Source: Macrostomum hystrix (taxonomy: Eukaryota; Animalia; Platyhelminthes). Taken from it: 64,000 nt of DNA. Where the stretch lies: the NCBI GenBank assembly GCA_950097015.1, contig CATNEN010000001.1, forward strand, positions 24,366,001-24,430,000, written 5' to 3'. Under the pieces are notes generated by a model, which had not been told where the DNA came from, did no database searches, and was given only the letters and a program-made list of their open reading frames with translations. Made by a program: the position numbers and the translations under genes. Of the stretch, positions 125 through 12,139 are shown in pieces. Numbering within the stretch: position 1 is the first letter of the stretch; each line of letters opens with the position of its first letter.

Positions 125-284
125 CCCATCCGATAGCCATGTAGTTTCCTGTGCTCAGCTTGGCTGTGGACATTGTGTTCACGAAGATCAGCATGTAGAG
201 GTGCAGAGCCTCGACTGAGACCCAGGCAAAACTGGCCAGCACACTGTACGTCATCAGAGCTTGGTTCGCTCGGCACGGAATGCT
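125..284 (-). CDS. GPCR exon: TM3-ICL2-start of TM4
   Basis: [53 protein letters not shown](G); ttgcag| acceptor and |gtgagt donor. Confidence 0.93.
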
Positions 285-3200
285 CTGCAATGAAATATTC
301 ATTCATTTCCAAATGTCTTCTATGGGTCGGCTTTGAGCCGCAGCCGCAAAAGTCTTTCGTAACCATAAAGTCTAAGGTGCACTGAGTTGTCGGATAATTA
401 GATCAGCTGCTCCATTACCGGGTCCCTAGATCAGCTGCTCCATTATCAGGTCTCTAGATCAGCTACTGTCCCTAGATCAGCTACTGTCCCTAGATCAGCT
501 ACTATGTCCCTAGATCAGCTACTGTCCCTAGATCAGCTACTATGTCCCTAGATCAGCTACTGTCCCTAGATCAGCTACTATGTCCCTAGATCAGCTACTG
601 TCCCTAGATCAGCTACTATGTCCCTAGATCAGCTACTGTCCCTAGATCAGCTACTGTCCCTATATCAGCTACTAAGTCCCTAGATCAGCTACTGTCCCTA
701 GATCAGCTACTGTCCCTAGATCAGCTAATGTCCCTAGATCAGCTACTGTCCCTAGATCAGCTACTATGTCCCTAGATCAGCTACTGTCCCTAGATCAGCT
801 ACTATGTCCCTAGATCAGCTACTGTCCCTAGATCAGCTACTGTCCCTAGATCAGCTACTAAGTCCCTAGATCAGCTACTGTCCCTAGATCAGCTACTGTC
901 CCTAGATCAGCTACTGTCCCTAGATCAGCTACTGTCCCTAGATCAGCTACTGTCCCTAGATCAGCTACTGTCCCTAGATCAGCTGCTCCATTATCAGGTC
1001 TCTAGATCAGCTACTGTCCCTAGATCAGCTACTGTCCCTAGATCAGCTACTATGTCCCTAGATCAGCTACTGTCCCTAGATCAGCTACTATGTCCCTAGA
1101 TCAGCTACTGTCCCTAGATCAGCTACTATGTCCCTAGATCAGCTACTGTCCCTAGATCAGCTACTATGTCCCTAGATCAGCTACTGTCCCTAGATCAGCT
1201 ACTGTCCCTATATCAGCTACTAAGTCCCTAGATCAGCTACTGTCCCTAGATCAGCTACTGTCCCTAGATCAGCTAATGTCCCTAGATCAGCTACTGTCCC
1301 TAGATCAGCTACTATGTCCCTAGATCAGCTACTGTCCCTAGATCAGCTACTATGTCCCTAGATCAGCTACTGTCCCTAGATCAGCTACTGTCCCTAGATC
1401 AGCTACTAAGTCCCTAGATCAGCTACTGTCCCTAGATCAGCTACTGTCCCTAGATCAGCTACTGTCCCTAGATCAGCTACTGTCCCTAGATCAGCTACTG
1501 TCCCTAGATCAGCTACTGTCCCTAGATCAGCTACTGTCCCTAGATCAGCTACTGTCCCTAGATCAGCTACTGTCCCTAGATCAGCTACTGTCCCTAGATC
1601 AGCTACTGTCCCTAGATCAGCTACTGTCCCTAGATCAGCTACTGTCCCTAGATCAGCTACTGTCCCTAGATCAGCTACTATGTCCCTAGATCAGCTACTA
1701 TGTCCCTAGATCAGCTACTGTCCCTAGATCAGCTACTGTCCCTAGATCAGCTACTATGTCCCTAGATCAGCTACTATGTCCCTAGATCAGCTACTGTCCC
1801 TAGATCAGCTACTGTCCCTAGATCAGCTACTATGTCCCTAGATCAGCTACTGTCCCTAGATCAGCTACTGTCCCTAGATCAGCTACTGTCCCTAGATCAG
1901 CTACTGTCCCTAGATCAGCTACTGTCCCTAGATCAGCTACTGTCCCTAGATCAGCTACTGTCCCTAGATCAGCTACTATGTCCCTAGATCAGCTACTGTC
2001 CCTAGATCAGCTACTGTCCCTAGATCAGCTACTGTCCCTAGATCAGCTACTGTCCCTAGATCAGCTACTGTCCCTAGATCGGCTACTGTCCCTAGATCAG
2101 CTACTGTCCCTAGATCAGCTACTGTCCCTAGATCAGCAACTGTCCCTAGATCAGCTACTATGTCCCTAGATCAGCTACTGTCCCTAGATCAGCTACTGTC
2201 CCTAGATCAGCTACTATGTCCCTAGATCAGCTACTGTGTCCGTGGAGTCGCAATGCTCCTCGGTCTCACCGGTTCATCATTGAGCACAAAGTAGGCTACA
2301 AAGTGACTGATGGCCCGCAGCATGAAGGCAACAAACAGGTTGATGTGGATGGCATTCCGTTGACAGTGCAGCCTCCTAAATATTCAAGTTTAGTTTTCGA
2401 GTTAGTTTACACATTTTGGGGATGAGTAATAAAACAGGCTGCGCTTATCCCACCTGAACGCGGCGAGCACAATGATGGCCAGCAGCAGGCAGGCCATAGA
2501 CAGCCCGTAGCCCACGTGACCCATGATGTGAATGGCCTGAATCACAGCGACAGGAATCTGTGAATAAAGATTAACAAATTTATTGCTTGACGCCATGCTG
2601 CACGACATAAAGTGGTTTCCTTGCCCAGAACCGCAGGTTGAAAAACTCATGAAGCTAATTGCTTTTCTCATAAACATTTACGATTCGTCCATCTGATCAA
2701 GTTAATTCCTTTTGCCCCTAAAGGCAGACATTTTTAGTAAGACTTTTCCATTTTGTGTTTCTTAATAATTGTAAGTGTTTATGCTAATTTTTTTTATTTC
2801 CATGCCGATACCGCCTTGGCAACCATATTCTTAACTAGATAGAACAAGGCAGAATTTCCAATACCCACATTTTTCTTTTTTCCATATCTCCCTATATGTC
2901 CAGATCTACCCAGATCTTCTAGATCTACCTACATCTGCCTAGATCTACCCAGACTTGTCTAGATCTACCCAGACTTGTCTAGATCTACCTATATCTGTCT
3001 AGATCTACCCAGATCTTCTAGATCTACCTACATCTGCCTAGATCTACCCAGATCTGTCTAGATCTACCTAGATCTGCCTAGATCTACCTATATCTGCCTA
3101 GATCTACCTATATCTGTCTAGATCTACCCAGACTTGTCTAGATCTACCCAGACTTGTCTAGATCTACCCAGATCTGTTTAGATCTACCCAGACCATACGT

Positions 3201-4693
3201 TGATGAGCCAGCAGCAGCAGCCACGGATTCACCTTGGTATTTTCCTCGTCCTTGAATGCGTAGCACTCGGTGAAGTTGGTCCAACCCTCCGCCATGGCTT
3301 CGGGACTTTTAGCCACGACGGAGTCCGGCCAGAGCCAGCTACCATTGGCCAGGCAGGTTCGCCAAGCCAGGCGGTTCCGGGAGAGATCGTTGAGGTGCCC
3401 TGGACAGGTCATGTAGACCCGGCTGTCAGCGGGAGCTCCGTGCCAGCAGAGCGCGCTGTCGAAGGCTGGCGGACAGCCTCCTCTGCCTCTGACGAATGAC
3501 ATCTGCATCAGCTTGCAGGTGATCTTCTCCAGTTTCACTCGTCTGAACTGGGTATCCTGGGACACGCGGGTCTTGGCCATCTGGAGCAGTTCAAAAACAA
3601 AAGCAATGACGTGTTGGGTTCATTGGATTGAATTGATCAGGGATTATCAATAAACAATCGGTGCGATAGAATAGGGGGTCAAGTGGTCACTCAAGGGGTA
3701 TAATCGTGGGAAGAATCGTGTCGGTAGAATCCAGGTGGTAGAATCCAGGGGGTAGAATCGAAAGGGTAGAATCCAGGGGGTAGAATAGAGTGGGTAGAAT
3801 CGGGTGGGGATAATCAAGGAGTATAATAGAGGGGATAGAAACTAGCAGGTAGAAACTAGAGGGTAGAATCGGGTGGGTAGAATCGGGTGGGTAGAATCGG
3901 GTGGGTAGAATCGGGTGGGTAGAATCGGGTGGGTAGAATCGAGGGGGTAGAATCGAGTTGAAGAATCGAGAGTGTAGAATCAAGAGGGTAGAATCAAGAG
4001 GGAAGAATCAAGAGGGTAGAATCGAGGGGGAGAATTGAGGGGGTAGTATTGTGGGGGTAGAATCGAGGGGGTAGAATTGAGGGGGTAGAATTGAGGGGGT
4101 AGAATTGAGGGGGTAGAATTGAGGGGGTAGAATTTAGGGGGTAGAATCGAGGGGGTAGAATCGAGGGGGTAGAATCGAGGGGGTAGAATCGAGGGGGTAG
4201 AATCGAGGGGGTAGAATCGAGGGGGTAGAATTGAGGGGGTAGAATCGAGGGGGTAGAATGTAGGGTTGAAAATAAGGTTAGATTTTAGAGGTAGAATTAG
4301 TTGTCGAAATGAAGCAGGCACGACTTTCTCATTGTGAGGCAGTGTACAGTTTCACAGCCGCCTCTTCGCCTGGCAGATTAAGTTTAAAATGAAGCTCAGC
4401 CTTTCTCTGCACTGAAAATGCTTCTCTGCACTTTTAATTCCACAGAAGCAGCAAGTTTCTGAGTCAATATTATTTCCGCTCGTGTTGTTTTTGATCAGTT
4501 TTGTATCGAATTGCGACAGATTTCGTAGAGGAGTGTTAAAAAGAAGCCAAATTTAGAATGAGATGACGCGCGGGTCAAAATGTCAGAACCGAAGGCACCT
4601 GGCGTGTTTAGTCGGCTCAGCAAATATTTCTCATGCCGCACTTTCCTAACCCGGCCTCTGGTTGGCAACAACCTGCCTGGCAGTAACTGGCTT

Positions 4694-4756
<63 letters not shown>

Positions 4757-6594
4757 CTCTAAATAGTAAGACTCAGAGTCGGAACTCAAGGTCAGTCACA
4801 GAAAAACGTTGAGCACAAACGTTGAGAAAATGAATAGTAAGAAAAAAGTTTTTTAACGGAGCAGAAGGGAGGGATTTAAAAAAGTGGAAATTTTGAAATT
4901 TTACCCCAATCCTATTCTATTTTCGAGAATTTCTAATCCTTGCTCATTTCGCTTTTCAGAAAAATTAGGAATAGGAATATTTTTTTCTCTCGCTGAAATG
5001 GAAGGGTAGCATTGTGTGCAGTTCTCTAGATCAAGCATTTTTTCTAAGAATGAGCTCTCGCGAGCGACTGATAAGAGAGACTGACTGGCCGAAAGCCGAC
5101 ATCAGCTGATTCTGAAACTGCTGGCAGGATTGGGAGTGGGGCGGTCAGGGACTGCTCAGGATGAGGAATGCGAGAGCACAGCTGCTCGGAGATGGGGGGC
5201 CGTCTACCGAAATTTGATATTCAAGTGTTGCAGCATTTTCTTAACGACAGGAAGGGAGATTAGCGTAGCGCATCGATACAAACCATCGATTGCTGGAGCG
5301 GTAAATGCGCTGCAGCTTGGCAATTTTTATGATTCACAATTTAACTGGCGGAATGCCATTTACTTTTGTCATTTTAACATTTATGTACTGCCTGCTTAAT
5401 CCTGTCTCCTTCCTTAATCCAGTCCTTAATCCTGTCTGCTTAATAAAGCCAGTTTTTTTATATTATCTGCACCTATCTGATCCATGTACAATGAGATTCC
5501 ACGAGATTCCGTGAGATTCCACGATATTCCACGAGATTCCACGAGATTCCACGAGATCTCACGAGATTGCATGAGATCTTACGAGATTCCATGAGATTGC
5601 ATGAGATTCCATGAGATTCCATGAGATTCCATGAGATTCCACGAGATCTCACGAGATCTCACGAGATTACATGAGATCTTACGAGATTCCATGAGATTCC
5701 ATGAGATTCCATTAGATTCCACGAGATCTCACGAGATTACATGAGATCTTACGAGATTCCATGAGATTCCATGAGATTCCATGAGATTCCACGAGATTTC
5801 ACGAGATCTCTCGAGATTACATGAGATCTCACGAGGTTACATGAGATTCCACGAGATTTCATGAGATCTCACGAGATTACATGAGATCTTACGACGTTAC
5901 ATGAGATCTTACGAGGTTACATGAGATCTCACGAGGTTACATGAGATTCCACGAGATTTCATGAGATCTCACGAGGTTACATGAGATTCCACGAGATTTC
6001 ATGAGATCTCACGAGGTTACATGAGATTCCACGAGATTTCATGAGATCTCACGAGGTTACATGAGATTCCACGAGATTTCATGAGATCTCACGAGGTTAC
6101 ATGAGATTCCCTGTGATTCGACAACGCCAAAAGCCGCACTGAATCCAAGGAATCAGTCTGGTCTGACGAAGTCTCACCAGTCTAGCCACCGTGTTGTACA
6201 GGCCACGCGGCGAGCAGCTGCTGTAGTTGGTGTACGAGCTGTCAATGACAATGAGCTTATTCGGCCTGTAGCTGTCATCCGCCGGCTCCTTCTCCGGCGT
6301 CGCCCTCGACTCCCAGTTGCCGTCGCCTCCGCAGCGCCTGGTCGCCGAGCCGGACGCGAAGACCTCAGCCGGGCAGGGCAGGTTGAGGCGGGTGCCAGCC
6401 GGGGTCCGCGGCCAGCAGATGAACCCGTCGAAGGAGTCCGGGCAGTGCGGCAGAGATGGCGACGTGGCATTCATGGGAGCCCAAAGCTGCTTTAGCAGGG
6501 CCTGCCGGATCTGGATGCCCGACTGCAGGCAGTCTGTCTCCCGCTTCTTCAGGGCCGCCTGCGCCGACTCTACCTGGGCCTGATCCCAATTGGC
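125..6594 (-). CDS. Class B1 (secretin-family) GPCR with two tandem hormone-binding ectodomains; partial (TM4 onward lies left of the window, 5' end unresolved)
   Basis: Exons 6594-6178, 3580-3233, 2557-2454, 2375-2270 and 284-125 are all AG/GT-flanked with matching phases (0,0,2,0,1). Motifs: [11 protein letters not shown] and [11 protein letters not shown] (ectodomains), GYGLSMACL (TM1), [15 protein letters not shown] (ICL1/TM2), [10 protein letters not shown] (TM3), IGWG (TM4). Confidence 0.92.
398..2236. repeat. 18/20-bp minisatellite (CCCTAGATCAGCTACT[AT]GT)n
   Basis: Direct reading; includes a 548-bp internal duplication. Confidence 0.97.
2270..2375 (-). CDS. GPCR exon: ICL1/TM2
   Basis: [35 protein letters not shown]; follows a 78-nt intron; donor gtgaga. 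Confidence 0.93.
2454..2557 (-). CDS. GPCR exon: TM1
   Basis: [34 protein letters not shown](R); ttcacag| acceptor and |gtggga donor. Confidence 0.92.
2900..3192. repeat. 10/20-bp minisatellite (AGATCTACCC/AGACTTGTCT)
   Basis: Direct reading. Confidence 0.93.
3233..3580 (-). CDS. GPCR exon: hormone-binding ectodomain 2
   Basis: 348 nt, phase 0-0, ctccag|ATG...AAG|gtgaat. Encodes ITC...[16 protein letters not shown]...TCP...RTCLANGSW...WTNFTEC, with six cysteines. Confidence 0.92.
3705..4262. repeat. 14-bp minisatellite (AGAATCGAGGGGGT)n
   Basis: Direct reading. Confidence 0.93.
4695..4753. repeat. (CA)n microsatellite
   Basis: Direct reading. Confidence 0.97.
5491..6110. repeat. 10-bp minisatellite (AYGAGATTCC)n
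   Basis: Direct reading. Confidence 0.95.
6178..6594 (-). CDS. GPCR exon: hormone-binding ectodomain 1
   Basis: 417 nt, phase 0-0, cgctag|GCC...CTG|gtgaga. Encodes [26 protein letters not shown]...[18 protein letters not shown]...PCP...RRCGGDGNW...TNYSSC, with six cysteines. Confidence 0.9.
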
Positions 6595-6611
6595 CTAGCG
6601 GGTGCGGGGTG

Positions 6612-8105
6612 GGGGAGAAGTAGGTTGGGAGAGAAGTAGGTTGGGAGAGAAGTAGGTTGTGAGAGAAGTAGGTTGGGTGAGAAGTAGGTTGGGTGAGAAG
6701 TAGGTTGGGTGAGAAGTAGGTTGGGTGAGAAGTAGGTTGGGAGAGAAGCAGGTTGGGAGAGAAGTAGGTTGGGTGATTAGTAGGTTGGGTGAGAAGTAGG
6801 TTGGGTGAGAAGTAGGTTGGGTGAGAAGTAGGTTGGGTGAGAAGTAGGTTGGGTGATTAGTAGGTTGGGTGAGAAGTAGGTTGGGTGAGAAGTAGGTTGG
6901 GTGAGAAGTAGGTTGGGTGAGAAGTAGTTTGAGAGAGAAGTAGGTTGGGTGAGAAGTAGGTTGAGAGAGAAGTAGGTTGGGTGAGAAGTAGGTTGGGAGA
7001 GAAGTAGGTTGTGAGAGAAGTAGGTTGGGTGAGAAGTAGGTTGGGTGAGAAGTAGGTTGGGTGAGAAGTAGGTTGGGAGAGAAGCAGGTTGGGAGAGAAG
7101 TAGGTTGGGTGATTAGTAGGTTGGGTGAGAAGTAGGTTGGGTGAGAAGTAGGTTGAGAGAGAAGTAGGTTGGGTGAGAAGTAGGTTGAGAGAGAAGTAGG
7201 TTGGGTGAGAAGTAGGTTGAGAGAGAAGTAGGTTGGGTGAGAAGTAGGTTGGGTGAGAAGTAGGTTGGGTGAGAAGTAGGTTGGGTGAGAAGTAGGTTGG
7301 GTGAGAAGTAGGTTGGGAGAGAAGTAGGTTGGGAGAGAAGTAGGTTAGGTGATTAGTAGGTTGGGTGAGAAGTAGGTTGGGTGAGAAGTAGGTTGAGAGA
7401 GAAGTAGGTTGGGTGAGAAGTAGGTTGGGTGAGAAGTAGGTTGAGAGAGAAGTAGGTTGGGTGAGAAGTAGGTTGGGTGAGAAGTAGGTTGAGAGAGAAG
7501 TAGGTTGGGTGAGAAGTAGGTTGAGAGAGAAGTAGGTTGGGTGAGAAGTAGGTTGAGAGAGAAGTAGGTTGGGTGAGAAGTAGGTTGAGAGAGAAGTAGG
7601 TTGGGTGATTAGTAGGTTGGGTGAGAAGTAGGTTGGGTGAGAAGTAGGTTGAGAGAGAAGTAGGTTGGGTGAGAAGTAGGTTGGGTGAGAAGTAGGTTGG
7701 GTGAGAAGTAGGTTGGGTGAGAAGTAGGTTGGGTGAGAAGTAGGTTGGGAGAGAAGCAGGTTGGGAGAGAAGTAGGTTGGGTGATTAGTAGATTGGGTGA
7801 GAAGTAGGTTGGGTGAGAAGTAGGTTGAGAGAGAAGTAGGTTGGGTGAGAAGTAGGTTGGGTGATAAGTAGGTTGGGTGATAAGTAGGTTGGGTGAGAAG
7901 TAGGTTGAGAGAGAAGTACGTTGGGTGAGAAGTAGGTTGGGTGATAAGTGGGTTGGGTGAGAAGTAGGTTGGGTGAGAAGTAGGTTGGGTGATAAGTGGG
8001 TTGGGTGAGAAGTAGGTTGGGTGAGAAGTAGGTTGAGAGAGAAGTACGTTGGGTGAGAAGTAGTTTGGTTGAGAAGTGGGTTGGGTGAGAAGTAGGTTGG
8101 TGAGA
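6612..8105. repeat. 16-bp minisatellite (GAGAAGTAGGTTGGGT)n
   Basis: Direct reading. Confidence 0.97.
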
Positions 8106-8930
8106 GGATAGAGACCTTGGAAGGGAGAAGTAGAAAAAATAAAGAAGTAGATAGAGGAGAGGAGTGGTCAGTAGATAGCGAGAGAAGTAGATAGAGAGAA
8201 AAGTAGATAATTAGACACCTGATGGGTAGAGAAGTAGGTAATGAGACAAGTAGGTAGGTCAACAAGTAGGTAGGGAAAGAAGTAGATATAGAGAAAGTAT
8301 ATTCAGAAAAAAGTACATCGTGAGGAGTATACCGAGAGAAGCAGATGAAGAGAAGTAGACAGGTTGAAAGGATACGATTGGTCTGAGCAAAATGTACTGC
8401 AGTGTCTGGTGCAGTCTGGAGTAGCTGAGCTGCAGTTTGAGCAGTCAGCGAGGTGGAGTGCTGAATTAGATAACACACAATTGCATTATGATCCGAGCTA
8501 ATCAGATCAGAACGGAGAGTTCAGCAGATGAAGCAGACACCTCAATGCTTGGAGCAATTTGTCTCAGTTTGACTTTAGTCCAACTCCCTGACTGTGCAAG
8601 ATAAATTTGTCTCCTAAAACTGCGGGCAGGCAGAGGTTCCGGAAGAACACACCTTCATCATTTGACGACTCATTAAAATGCTCAATATGAAGAGAGTGAG
8701 TTCGCCGGAACTCGTTAGCAACTGAAACACAATGAGCTTCCTTGCATCTGGGAGGCGTCTCCCGTGCCCATCACATGAGAGCCGGCCCCACCCTGTTTTC
8801 GCGTGTGAAATAGAAATTTCTAGAAATTTGTTTTTGAGGAGTTGCTACACTGGCTGAGTTCCACTGCTCAACTGGATACGGCTGTGCTCAGCTGGAGAGA
8901 AAAATCTGCCGGAGCTAGATTTGACTGTAT

Positions 8931-9688
8931 CAGACTAGACTAGATTAGACTAGATTAGATTAGATTAGACTAGACTAGACTAGATTAGATTAGACTAGAT
9001 TAGACTAGACTAGACTAGATTAGACTAGATTAGACTAGATTAGATTAGATTAGACTAGACTAGACTAGATTAGATTAGACTAGATTAGACTAGATTTGAC
9101 TAGATTAGATTAGACTAGACTAGATTAGATTAGATTAGACTAGATTAGACTAGATTAGACTAGACTAGATTAGATTAGACTAGACTAGATTAGACTAGAT
9201 TAGATTAGACTAGATTAGATTAGATTAGATTAGAATAGACTAGATTAGATTAGACTAGACTAGACTAGATTTGACTAGATTAGATTAGACTAGACTAGAT
9301 TAGATTAGATTAGACTAGATTAGACTAGATTAGACTAGATTAGACTAGACTAGACTAGATTAGACTAGATTAGACTAGACTAGACTAGATTAGATTAGAC
9401 TAGACTAGATTAGACTAGATTAGATTAGATGAGACTAGACTAGACTAGATTAGACTAGATTAGATTAGACTAGACTAGATTAGATTAGACTAGATTAGAC
9501 TAGATTAGATTAGATTAGATTAAACTAGATTAGATTAGATTAGACTAGATTAGATTAGACTAGATTAGATTAGATTAGATTAGACTGTATCAGGCTAGAC
9601 TATATTATATTAGACTAGATTAGACTAGGTTAGATTAGATTAGATTAGACTGTATCAGGCTAGCCTATATTAGATTAAGACTAGATTA
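8931..9688. repeat. Pentanucleotide array (TAGAY)n
   Basis: Direct reading. Confidence 0.97.
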
Positions 9689-10496
9689 AAAAACATTTAA
9701 AAGCCAGCTGCAAATCTAATTAACTATTGCATCATCCCTGACGTATCGCACCAGCGGTACTAGCAATCTTAACTGCCGTCGCGTGATCGATTCCCAGGTG
9801 TGCGGTATTCGAGGACACCCGAGGAAAGCCGTGGTTTATAGGAAAACTTTTCCTTCTAAAAGCAGCAGCAGCAGAGACAGGTGAAAAAAACGACAGTTAG
9901 TATTTTGCGTGCACAAAAACACAACCGGTGAATCCACGGTTGATTTATTGACTCCCCCCAGGTAGATATTTGAAACTCCCAGCCTGAGCTGAGAGACCCC
10001 GAGGGAAACAAGTGGAGCTCCCTAATTAGTAATCCGAACTCCGAGAGGCTCGATTCGAGCATAAAAAGGCGCAGGTAGGACGGCGGTTCGAGTTTGCCAG
10101 CTTATTTCTGGAATCCGGGAATTATTTTTGGGTGATTTGCCATCGCGGTTCACAGGTGGCTGTGCTGCTGAGCTGGGCGATTTCGGGATAATGAGTAAGT
10201 AAGAAGTAATAGGTTAGGACTCAGAATTCGGCTGGAGCTAATGAGTAGATACTCCGCTGAGTAAAGTGCAACACAAAAGGAATAGTGCGTTATTAATAAT
10301 TAGTTAGCTTTTGAGAACACCTGCGCAATGTAGGAACCTGATAGAATTGTACGAACTGATTTGGGATCTGATTGACGGTGTGAAACAGGGCAAAACTGTG
10401 AGTGACATCTTAACGGAATATGCTATGAGACGTTAGACTGACAATGAGATTAAGACTGGAGAGTGACACTAAGAGTGACAATGAGAGTGACACTGA

Positions 10497-11230
10497 GAAT
10501 TGGCATTGGGAGAATGACAGTGGGACAGTGGGAGAATGGCAGTGGGAGAATGGCAGTGGAAAAATGGCAGTGGGAGAATGGCAGTGGCAGAATGGCAGTG
10601 GGAGAATGGCAGTGGGAGAATGGCAGTGGGTGAATAGCATTGGCAGAAGGGCAGTGGGAGAATGGCAGTGGGACAGTGGGAGAATGGCAGTGGGAGAATG
10701 ACAGTGGGACAGTGGGAGAATGGCAGTGGGAGAATGGCAGTGGGACAGTGGGAGAATGGCAGTGGGAGAATGGCCGTGGGACAGTGGGAGAATGGGAGTG
10801 GGAGAATGGGAGTGTGAGAATGGCAGTGGCAGAATGGCAGTGGGAGAATGGCAGTGGGAGAATGGCAGTGGGTGAATAGCATTGGCAGAAGGGCAGTGGG
10901 AGAATGGTAGTGGGACAGTGGGAGAATGGCAGTGGGAGAATGGCAGTGGGAGAATGGCAGTGGCAGAAGGGCAGTGGGACAGTGGGAGAATGGCAGTGGG
11001 AGAATGGCAGTGGGACAGTGGGAGAATGGGAGTGGGAGAATGGGAGTGTGAGAATGGCAGTGGCAGAATGGCAGTGGGAGAATGGCAGTGGGTGAATAGC
11101 ATTGGCAGAAGGGCAGTGGGAGAATGGCAGTGGGAGAATGGCAGTGGGACAGTGGGAGAATGGGAGTGGGAGAATGGGAGTGTGAGAATGGCAGTGGCAG
11201 AATGGCAGTGGGAGAATGGCAGTGGGAGTG
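10497..11230. repeat. Compound 14/8-bp minisatellite (GGGAGAATGGCAGT / GGGACAGT)
   Basis: Direct reading. Confidence 0.95.
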
Positions 11231-12139
11231 CCCAAGACTGAAAATAAGAACTTGCCTGTCATATGGCCCATCTCGCAGCCTTTCGAAATAAGCTAAAAAA
11301 TTTCTGCGAACTCATTCAATTTGACCGCCCATGCCGTGTCAAATATAATTGACGAAAAACCCCGAGGCGCCAAAGAAACTAAAAACAGAATCTGGGCCCA
11401 GTCAGTGGGTAGGGCTGCACGGGTCTTTGCCGTCTTGTTTTTCTGAAGATTTCATATCACGTGACCTGAGATTTAAGTCCTAGACCTTTCAGCTAGACCT
11501 AGGCACAGGCATGGTGAACTCAAGTAGCCTAGGTGTACTCAAGTCTACGGACTCAGATTAATAGGGCCTCGCCGTGGAATCGAACTCAGGACCTTGTGTA
11601 AAATGTAAAAGCAAGGCAGCAAATATCTTACCGATGCCAAATGTCCAAAGTAGATTATTGTTAGGAAAATTGTTAGACAAAATTTATCTGTAAACTTCAT
11701 TGTTATGCTGACAGGTAGAAAAAAACAGCACTGGGTTGGATTGCAGCTTGAGCATATTGTGTGGTAGAGTGAGTCTAATATTTATGCTTTGGTTAAAATT
11801 CCGAGGAATTGGGAAAACAACTCTGCCCACGCTGGCCCTTCCGTGTGGTCAGATGGAGAGCCTTTTGACCAATGAAAGCCGGGCTGGTCTGTGATTGGCT
11901 GTCCTCCTGAGTCACGCCTGGGTTGGTGGTTGGTGTGGACTCAGGAGATGGTTTGGGGAGGATTGGAATTCTCTAGTTTGACTGTCCGAGCGGCTTAGAT
12001 CAAAGGCTTTGCCAACGGAATGGGGGGAAGGTAGTTTTCACAGATTGTGGGGGGCTGTGTGAGATTATGGGAGTTTCAACACCGTGAAATTATGACAGGG
12101 GGCTGGTTTCGATTGGCGAGGGAGGGAAAAAGCAGAATA

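Follow-up and report, generated by a model that had tools for sequence, protein, structure and literature searches.

A PTH-receptor-like class B1 receptor gene of the flatworm Macrostomum hystrix with two ectodomain exons ahead of one seven-transmembrane core

Class B1 (secretin-family) G protein-coupled receptors (GPCRs) count in textbooks as one-ectodomain, two-step peptide sensors. A pufferfish calcitonin receptor with four hormone-binding domains was reportedly cloned and expressed by Nag et al. in 2007 (Gen Comp Endocrinol 154:48). Among database models, the order HRM-HRM-7tm_2 is found in receptors that are calcitonin/CGRP-receptor-like by name from Ischnura (damselfly), Cloeon (mayfly), Centruroides (scorpion), Nymphon (sea spider) and Penaeus (shrimp), and in Condylostylus (fly) a PDF-receptor model carries two HRM domains and 7tm_2. 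In the fish Stegastes partitus a four-HRM receptor is listed (XP_008287491), P0003 and P0151 consist of four HRM stretches and 7tm_2, and further examples may be held by an ESM Atlas cluster in which 75 chordate receptors, each about 791 aa long, are grouped. In a survey of flatworm GPCRs, the schistosome PTH-receptor-like gene was described only with "an HRM domain" (Zamanian et al., PMC3261222). The literature searched contained no description of tandem HRM domains for class B1 receptors of flatworms or arthropods. The present text concerns a 64,000-nt stretch of Macrostomum hystrix DNA (assembly GCA_950097015.1, contig CATNEN010000001.1, positions 24,366,001 to 24,430,000), here called the window, which appears to carry a single PTH-receptor-like class B1 gene with a span of ~19 kb. 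Two of its exons encode complete ectodomains, the membrane-distal ECD1 and the membrane-proximal ECD2, ahead of one seven-transmembrane (7TM) core. Both exons are probably included in the main transcript (probability about 0.6), which would yield a receptor of the order signal peptide, ECD1, ECD2, 7TM; the figure is the authors' judgement from genomic exons, gene models and splice borders. Coordinates are positions in the window unless prefixed with L or C, and L001 denotes the adjoining 10 kb below window position 1.

The two ectodomains and their paralogs

Each exon was searched singly, and the natural Macrostomum lignano protein P0001 served as proxy for the two-domain protein. Against the Pfam HRM profile (PF02793, curated cut-off 26.2 bits) the ECD1 exon scored 53.1 bits (E 4.3e-14) and the ECD2 exon 47.2 bits (E 2.9e-12). 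Exactly six cysteines at the expected places and the C-x3-FD-x3-CW core are present in each, and the invariant C..FD...CW, CP and R.C positions are kept in both, at an identity between ECD1 and ECD2 of about 20-25%. The two were folded separately with AlphaFold2 on a 38-row alignment; MAFFT stacks all ectodomains onto one of the two P0001 domains, so that a proper two-domain alignment was not obtained. The ECD1 model (predicted local distance difference test, pLDDT, 84.6) has a long N-terminal helix, a beta core and a short C-terminal helix, with an insert at ~100-120 as its sole poorly defined part, and the ECD2 model reached a pLDDT of 88.3. Foldseek returned only class B ectodomains from the PDB for either model. 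For ECD1 these were CLR, CTR, PTH1R and GLP1R (probability 1.00 for the first three, TM by target at most 0.80), and for ECD2 the best was 7f16 (PTH2R, root-mean-square deviation 2.7), followed by CLR and PTH1R. In sequence, the best PDB match of ECD2 was also PTH2R 7f16 (E 9.7e-8), over residues 13-109, nearly the whole length; ECD1 matched several class B ectodomains in the core only, at about 2e-5. The models indicate that both ectodomains are intact and fold-competent. A predicted complex of ECD1 with ECD2 scored 0.02, which weighs neither for nor against a tandem arrangement.

The ECD1 exon is bordered by ctag/GCC ... CTG/gtgaga and the ECD2 exon by ccag/ATG ... AAG/gtgaat, the ATG standing directly after the acceptor. 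All six splice sites from ECD1 through TM1 are strong-looking GT-AG sites, and the TM1 exon joins the ectodomain exons in frame. An in-frame stop codon lies directly upstream of 6594, so the ECD1 acceptor at this position is forced and the frame has no start further upstream. An earlier note on this stretch had claimed a whole six-cysteine ectodomain on each of two exons (417 and 348 nt), both of symmetric phase 0-0 and in frame with each other and with TM1. The Pfam matches, cysteine counts and fold models confirm the first part of that claim, and the multiple-of-3 lengths and AG/GT borders confirm the second. The two HRM matches that it had expected were obtained, one per exon, with two HRMs plus 7tm_2 in the proxy P0001, and in the structure prediction that it had proposed each exon models as a class B ectodomain.

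The arrangement is not confined to the window. A six-frame HRM scan covered the whole genome (220 Mb, 42 contigs) and gave 12 matches. Eight of these fall into four pairs, the two members always on one strand and with 7tm_2 exons after every pair (Table 1, last row). The translations of all eight ectodomain exons pass Pfam HRM. Among the four paralogs the ECD2 exon measures 348, 369, 336 and 390 nt and is always of phase 0-0, and the ECD1 donor is always of phase 0. The lengths of the two exons can be divided by 3 throughout, so that joint inclusion preserves the frame in each paralog. The ECD1-ECD2 introns range from 545 to 3888 nt, and the introns checked are all GT-AG. Within pairs, ECD1 and ECD2 exon lengths differ by 18-105 nt, the ECD1 acceptors being uncertain in the two C25 paralogs (C25a and C25b). 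In every paralog, the 21 residues ahead of the first ECD2 cysteine, from exon residue 4, keep one length and one pattern (x3-T-x-V-S...). A profile built from the eight exons was searched against 1.84 billion representative proteins and found as best match P0001 (E 3.3e-60). This protein is 583 residues long, contains two HRM stretches and 7tm_2, and is the ortholog of paralog C25a. Identity between C25a and P0001 is 75% in ECD2 and 49% in ECD1, and by this comparison ECD1 evolves faster than ECD2. In word-based protein searches the ECD1 exon gave no match within its length band, and the halves of P0001 retrieved only P0001 itself and distant PTH-receptor-like proteins, with no other flatworm ortholog.

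Chance pairing of HRM exons was ruled out, since eight of the 12 matches in the genome are paired, and a pseudogene was ruled out because all structural residues are retained in five orthologs or paralogs. As a processed retrocopy that would record the splice pattern, the sole other strong open-frame HRM (C1:17728619, in L008) was rejected, as it belongs to an adhesion-type GPCR. This 432-residue open frame (L008:1778-3076, or G000:C1:17728277-17729575) encodes cysteine-rich EGF/laminin-like repeats, one HRM and then a GAIN-like stretch. At three other class B1-like loci (C34:4327360, C39:8964426 and C3:6244088) the match in one frame stops at half of the HRM profile, the first, so their single ectodomains are taken to be intron-split, in contrast to the PTH-like family, where each ectodomain lies on one exon.

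Use of the two ectodomain exons

Joint inclusion is favored by several features of the gene and its relatives, the strong splice sites among them. Three simple kinds of mutual-exclusion device were checked, namely frame-shifting exon lengths, a very short intron and a U2/U12 mismatch, and none applies. A scan for an ATG, a hydrophobic core and a phase-0 donor in the 19 kb upstream of ECD1 gave a sole candidate, the first exon in Table 1, and the same scan upstream of ECD1 in paralog C38 also gave a sole candidate (L002:1902-1961, MASYECSSLAIIILIICASL/gtgagt). A laxer scan of the ECD1-ECD2 intron of three paralogs yielded no signal-peptide-like exon; each gene would therefore have one signal peptide, ahead of ECD1. 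The first residue of the ECD2 exon is Leu rather than Met in paralog C25a and in its ortholog from M. lignano, so that in these two it has to be an internal coding exon and not a start exon. The fixed 21-residue stretch before the first ECD2 cysteine would fit a constrained junction. The fast evolution of ECD1 would be expected of a distal accessory domain and fits this better than it fits an equal alternative to ECD2. In the gene model of P0001 the two ectodomains are joined in tandem, and P0012, an open reading frame (ORF) on a Logan contig, holds two HRMs within one uninterrupted frame. The arthropod two-HRM receptors keep both HRMs in all RefSeq isoforms listed, and together with P0012 they are precedent for co-translated HRMs.

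Other observations weigh against joint inclusion. It is read from genomic exons and gene models. The model of P0001 was made automatically and is partly faulty, as it lacks TM1, and gene prediction will link whatever exons are in frame. The phase 0-0 symmetry equally permits skipping of the ECD1 or the ECD2 exon. The tails after the last cysteine are similar (12 vs 10 residues), and each could lead into the TM1 exon. In three of the four paralogs the ATG of the ECD2 exon lies exactly at the acceptor, which suits an alternative start; this ATG could be such a start, a trans-splice acceptor or merely a conserved residue. It is located at window 3578-3580, L002:4518 and L005:5856, and may be compared with the homologous Met at residue 1 of P0164 (Mya arenaria, isoform X2).

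Several of these observations also suit a possible, clearly less probable reading, in which a transcript would as a rule include one ectodomain exon or the other, the two being mutually exclusive or independent cassettes. The main products would then be single-ectodomain receptors with one 7TM core and differing ligand specificity, with few or no tandem receptors. Homologous, adjacent, phase 0-0 exons, as seen in all four paralogs, are the classic product of tandem exon duplication, and ECD1 and ECD2 resemble the members of mutually exclusive exon clusters in being same-phase neighbors that encode the same structural unit. The interchangeable tails, the initial Met of ECD2 in three of four paralogs and the start of the mollusc PTH-receptor-like isoform P0164 at the homologous Met are in line with this. 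However, such clusters have the devices named above, which are absent from the flatworm gene, and no enforcing mechanism is visible: the lengths are multiples of 3, the introns are long and GT-AG, and the inverted repeats at the compact C38 locus measure no more than 12-20 nt and are chance-like, competing RNA pairing not having been examined exhaustively. The length differences within pairs and an ECD1/ECD2 identity of merely about 20-25% speak against it as well, and the 49% against 75% identity to M. lignano would better fit a peripheral domain than an equivalent alternative. A regulated module, by which cells would choose ECD1-only, ECD2-only or tandem receptors and thereby let a single 7TM core respond to different peptide hormones, and which would be kept in all four paralogs, is doubtful. 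No description of whole-ectodomain swapping by splicing for any class B1 receptor was found in the literature searched; such swapping, if true and regulated, would raise the interest of the gene sharply.

That the ECD1 exon stands outside the receptor, as a separate upstream gene (e.g. for a decoy that is secreted and consists of the ectodomain only) or as a relic that is not spliced in, with the receptor starting at the ECD2 ATG, is very improbable: the ATG first codon of ECD2 in three of four paralogs would suit it, and spliced-leader trans-splicing, which is common in Macrostomum, could use the ECD2 acceptor, but the ECD1 exon is free of stop codons and its donor is strong, neither a terminal exon nor a signal-peptide exon was seen in the ECD1-ECD2 intron, a receptor starting at ECD2 would be without a signal peptide, C25a and M. 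lignano have Leu at this position, and ECD1, which keeps every structural residue, is intact across the four paralogs and in both species, which does not fit a relic.

With both ectodomains included, ECD2 would be placed directly before the stalk and TM1, where all class B1 receptors of solved structure have their only ectodomain. In the usual two-step manner it would most likely capture the C-terminal helix of the peptide hormone, upon which the peptide N-terminus could enter the 7TM core. ECD1, the complete but faster-evolving distal domain, would be an accessory module. Its likeliest roles are those of an additional capture site, which would bind a longer or second peptide or raise the local ligand concentration, and of a lid that regulates access to ECD2; the present evidence does not distinguish between capture site and lid.

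Gene layout

The exons of the gene within the window are listed in Table 1. The TM1 exon aligns with TM1 of PTH receptors, and PF00002 (7tm_2) matches lie on the TM1/TM2 and TM3 exons. The gene extends below window position 1, with TM4 to the C-terminal tail at about L001:6321-2314. These remaining TM exons were located by tblastn with P0001, P0164 and P0165 (TM5 is partly covered), and since TM4 to the tail are present there, the 7tm_2 receptor core is intact. Next to the candidate first coding exon, window 11701-11730 holds a pyrimidine tract and AG (tttttttctacctgtcag), a possible spliced-leader acceptor whose end lies 7 nt ahead of the putative start codon, the ATG at 11700. Minisatellite arrays (periods 10-40 nt, at most 97 copies, 76-93% matches) fill almost every intron, at 450-2237, 2897-3192, 3708-4259, 5491-6110, 6610-8105, 8915-9651 and 10495-11228, and several of them translate as long spurious ORFs. 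In the TM3-TM4 intron (L001:6400-10000, 0-3.6 kb below the window start) no Rfam family was found at the gathering threshold.

Table 1. Receptor gene features in the window and the four paralogous loci (columns: feature, position, strand, description).
Candidate first coding exon	11632..11700	minus	putative 23-residue signal peptide MKFTDKFCLTIFLTIIYFGHLAS; phase-0 end at GTAAGA donor
ECD1 exon	6178..6594	minus	417 nt, 139 codons, phase 0-0; membrane-distal hormone-receptor domain, six cysteines
Intron ECD1-ECD2	3581..6177	minus	2597 nt; made up largely of minisatellites (14-mer, 20/40-mer) plus a run of (CA)n (Tandem Repeats Finder)
ECD2 exon	3233..3580	minus	348 nt, 116 codons, phase 0-0; membrane-proximal PTH-receptor-like ectodomain, six cysteines
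TM1 exon (stalk and TM1)	2454..2557	minus	104 nt, phase-0 start; 7tm_2 match C1:24368282-24368383
TM2 exon	2270..2375	minus	106 nt; tblastn 69% identity to P0001 and match to PTH2R-like TM2
TM3 exon	125..284	minus	160 nt; 7tm_2 match C1:24366123-24366302, E 2.7e-10
HRM-HRM-7tm_2 loci	C1 (window gene); C38 11.73 Mb; C25 3.36 Mb; C25 5.04 Mb		

Origin and comparison with known receptors

A maximum-likelihood tree of HRM domains was computed, from which the fish HRM rows were left out. The five flatworm ECD2s (four paralogs and M. lignano) form a clade with 100/99 support; the ECD1s of the window gene, C25a and M. lignano group at 94/68, and all five ECD1s weakly at 34/85. As the ECD1s and the ECD2s group by domain, the doubling of the ectodomain predates the expansion into four paralogs. 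The old and maintained duplication proposed in the earlier note is supported by its presence in four paralogs and in M. lignano. The two HRMs of Condylostylus arose by a separate, recent duplication (100/92), and the flatworm ECD1 groups with none of the arthropod first HRMs in this weakly resolved tree, so the ectodomain was doubled at least three independent times. For the flatworms, an independent duplication is the simplest reading.

The search for the architecture of two HRMs plus 7tm_2, suggested in the same note, returned three further loci in the genome, P0001 of M. lignano and the arthropod models. The uniqueness that the note had implied does not stand, as two-HRM class B1 models occur in several arthropod lineages and a four-HRM model in fish. 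The architecture was already visible in databases and has reportedly been published for fish, both of which limit the value of the finding. Two further matches, in Tachypleus and Haliotis, look like fused neighboring genes of the order HRM-7TM-HRM-7TM. Three proteins of ENA metagenome assemblies (P0002, P0162 and P0163; 1062-2866 aa) consist of 19-47 tandem 54-residue units, which match only the central part of the HRM profile (positions 51-97).

A second complete ectodomain that is kept through gene duplication and speciation means that the sensor end of class B1 receptors can be multiplied. Independent doublings are seen in PTH-like flatworm receptors, in calcitonin-like arthropod genes and in a PDF-receptor-like gene of a fly; the four-domain fish receptors are not on the tree. 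M. lignano is a transgenic laboratory model, so that the role of the extra domain (avidity, a second ligand or autoinhibition) is directly testable, and this could shed light on the little-studied cases in fish and arthropods.

PTH-receptor-like proteins are the best matches of the TM exons of the window and of the 7TM half of P0001, with Mya arenaria P0164 (30% identity), followed by salmonid PTH2R, as the closest full-length relatives. In the HRM tree, the flatworm ECD2 clade is not joined with support to the PTH2R rows. The family is filed as PTH-receptor-like from these best matches, by which the subfamily is suggested and not proven. PTH1R and PTH2R have the ectodomains best matched by the flatworm ECD2, both in sequence and in fold, the TM2 motif RRLHCxRNxIHxNLF is common to PTH-receptor-like proteins and the flatworm gene, and the first residue of the mollusc model P0164 aligns with the start of the flatworm ECD2 exon. 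In contrast to the one ectodomain of PTH receptors, the flatworm gene has a second complete one ahead of it, and the 7TM parts are very divergent (about 26-30% identity).

The arthropod two-HRM models share with the flatworm gene the order HRM-HRM-7tm_2 and a membrane-proximal HRM that is the better conserved of the two. They differ in that their 7TM and second HRM are calcitonin- or PDF-receptor-like, whereas those of the flatworm are PTH-receptor-like, and in the interdomain linker, which is about 40-100 residues in arthropods and ~35 in the flatworm (last ECD1 to first ECD2 cysteine). In the fish calcitonin/CGRP-type receptors tandem HRMs are likewise located N-terminal to 7tm_2 on a class B1 receptor, a likeness to the flatworm gene that holds at the level of genome and gene model. 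The fish receptors belong to the calcitonin subfamily, are from vertebrates and have four copies, while the flatworm gene is PTH-like and has two. The flatworm architecture is most simply read as an independent variant of the multi-HRM kind that is seen in fish and arthropod receptors.

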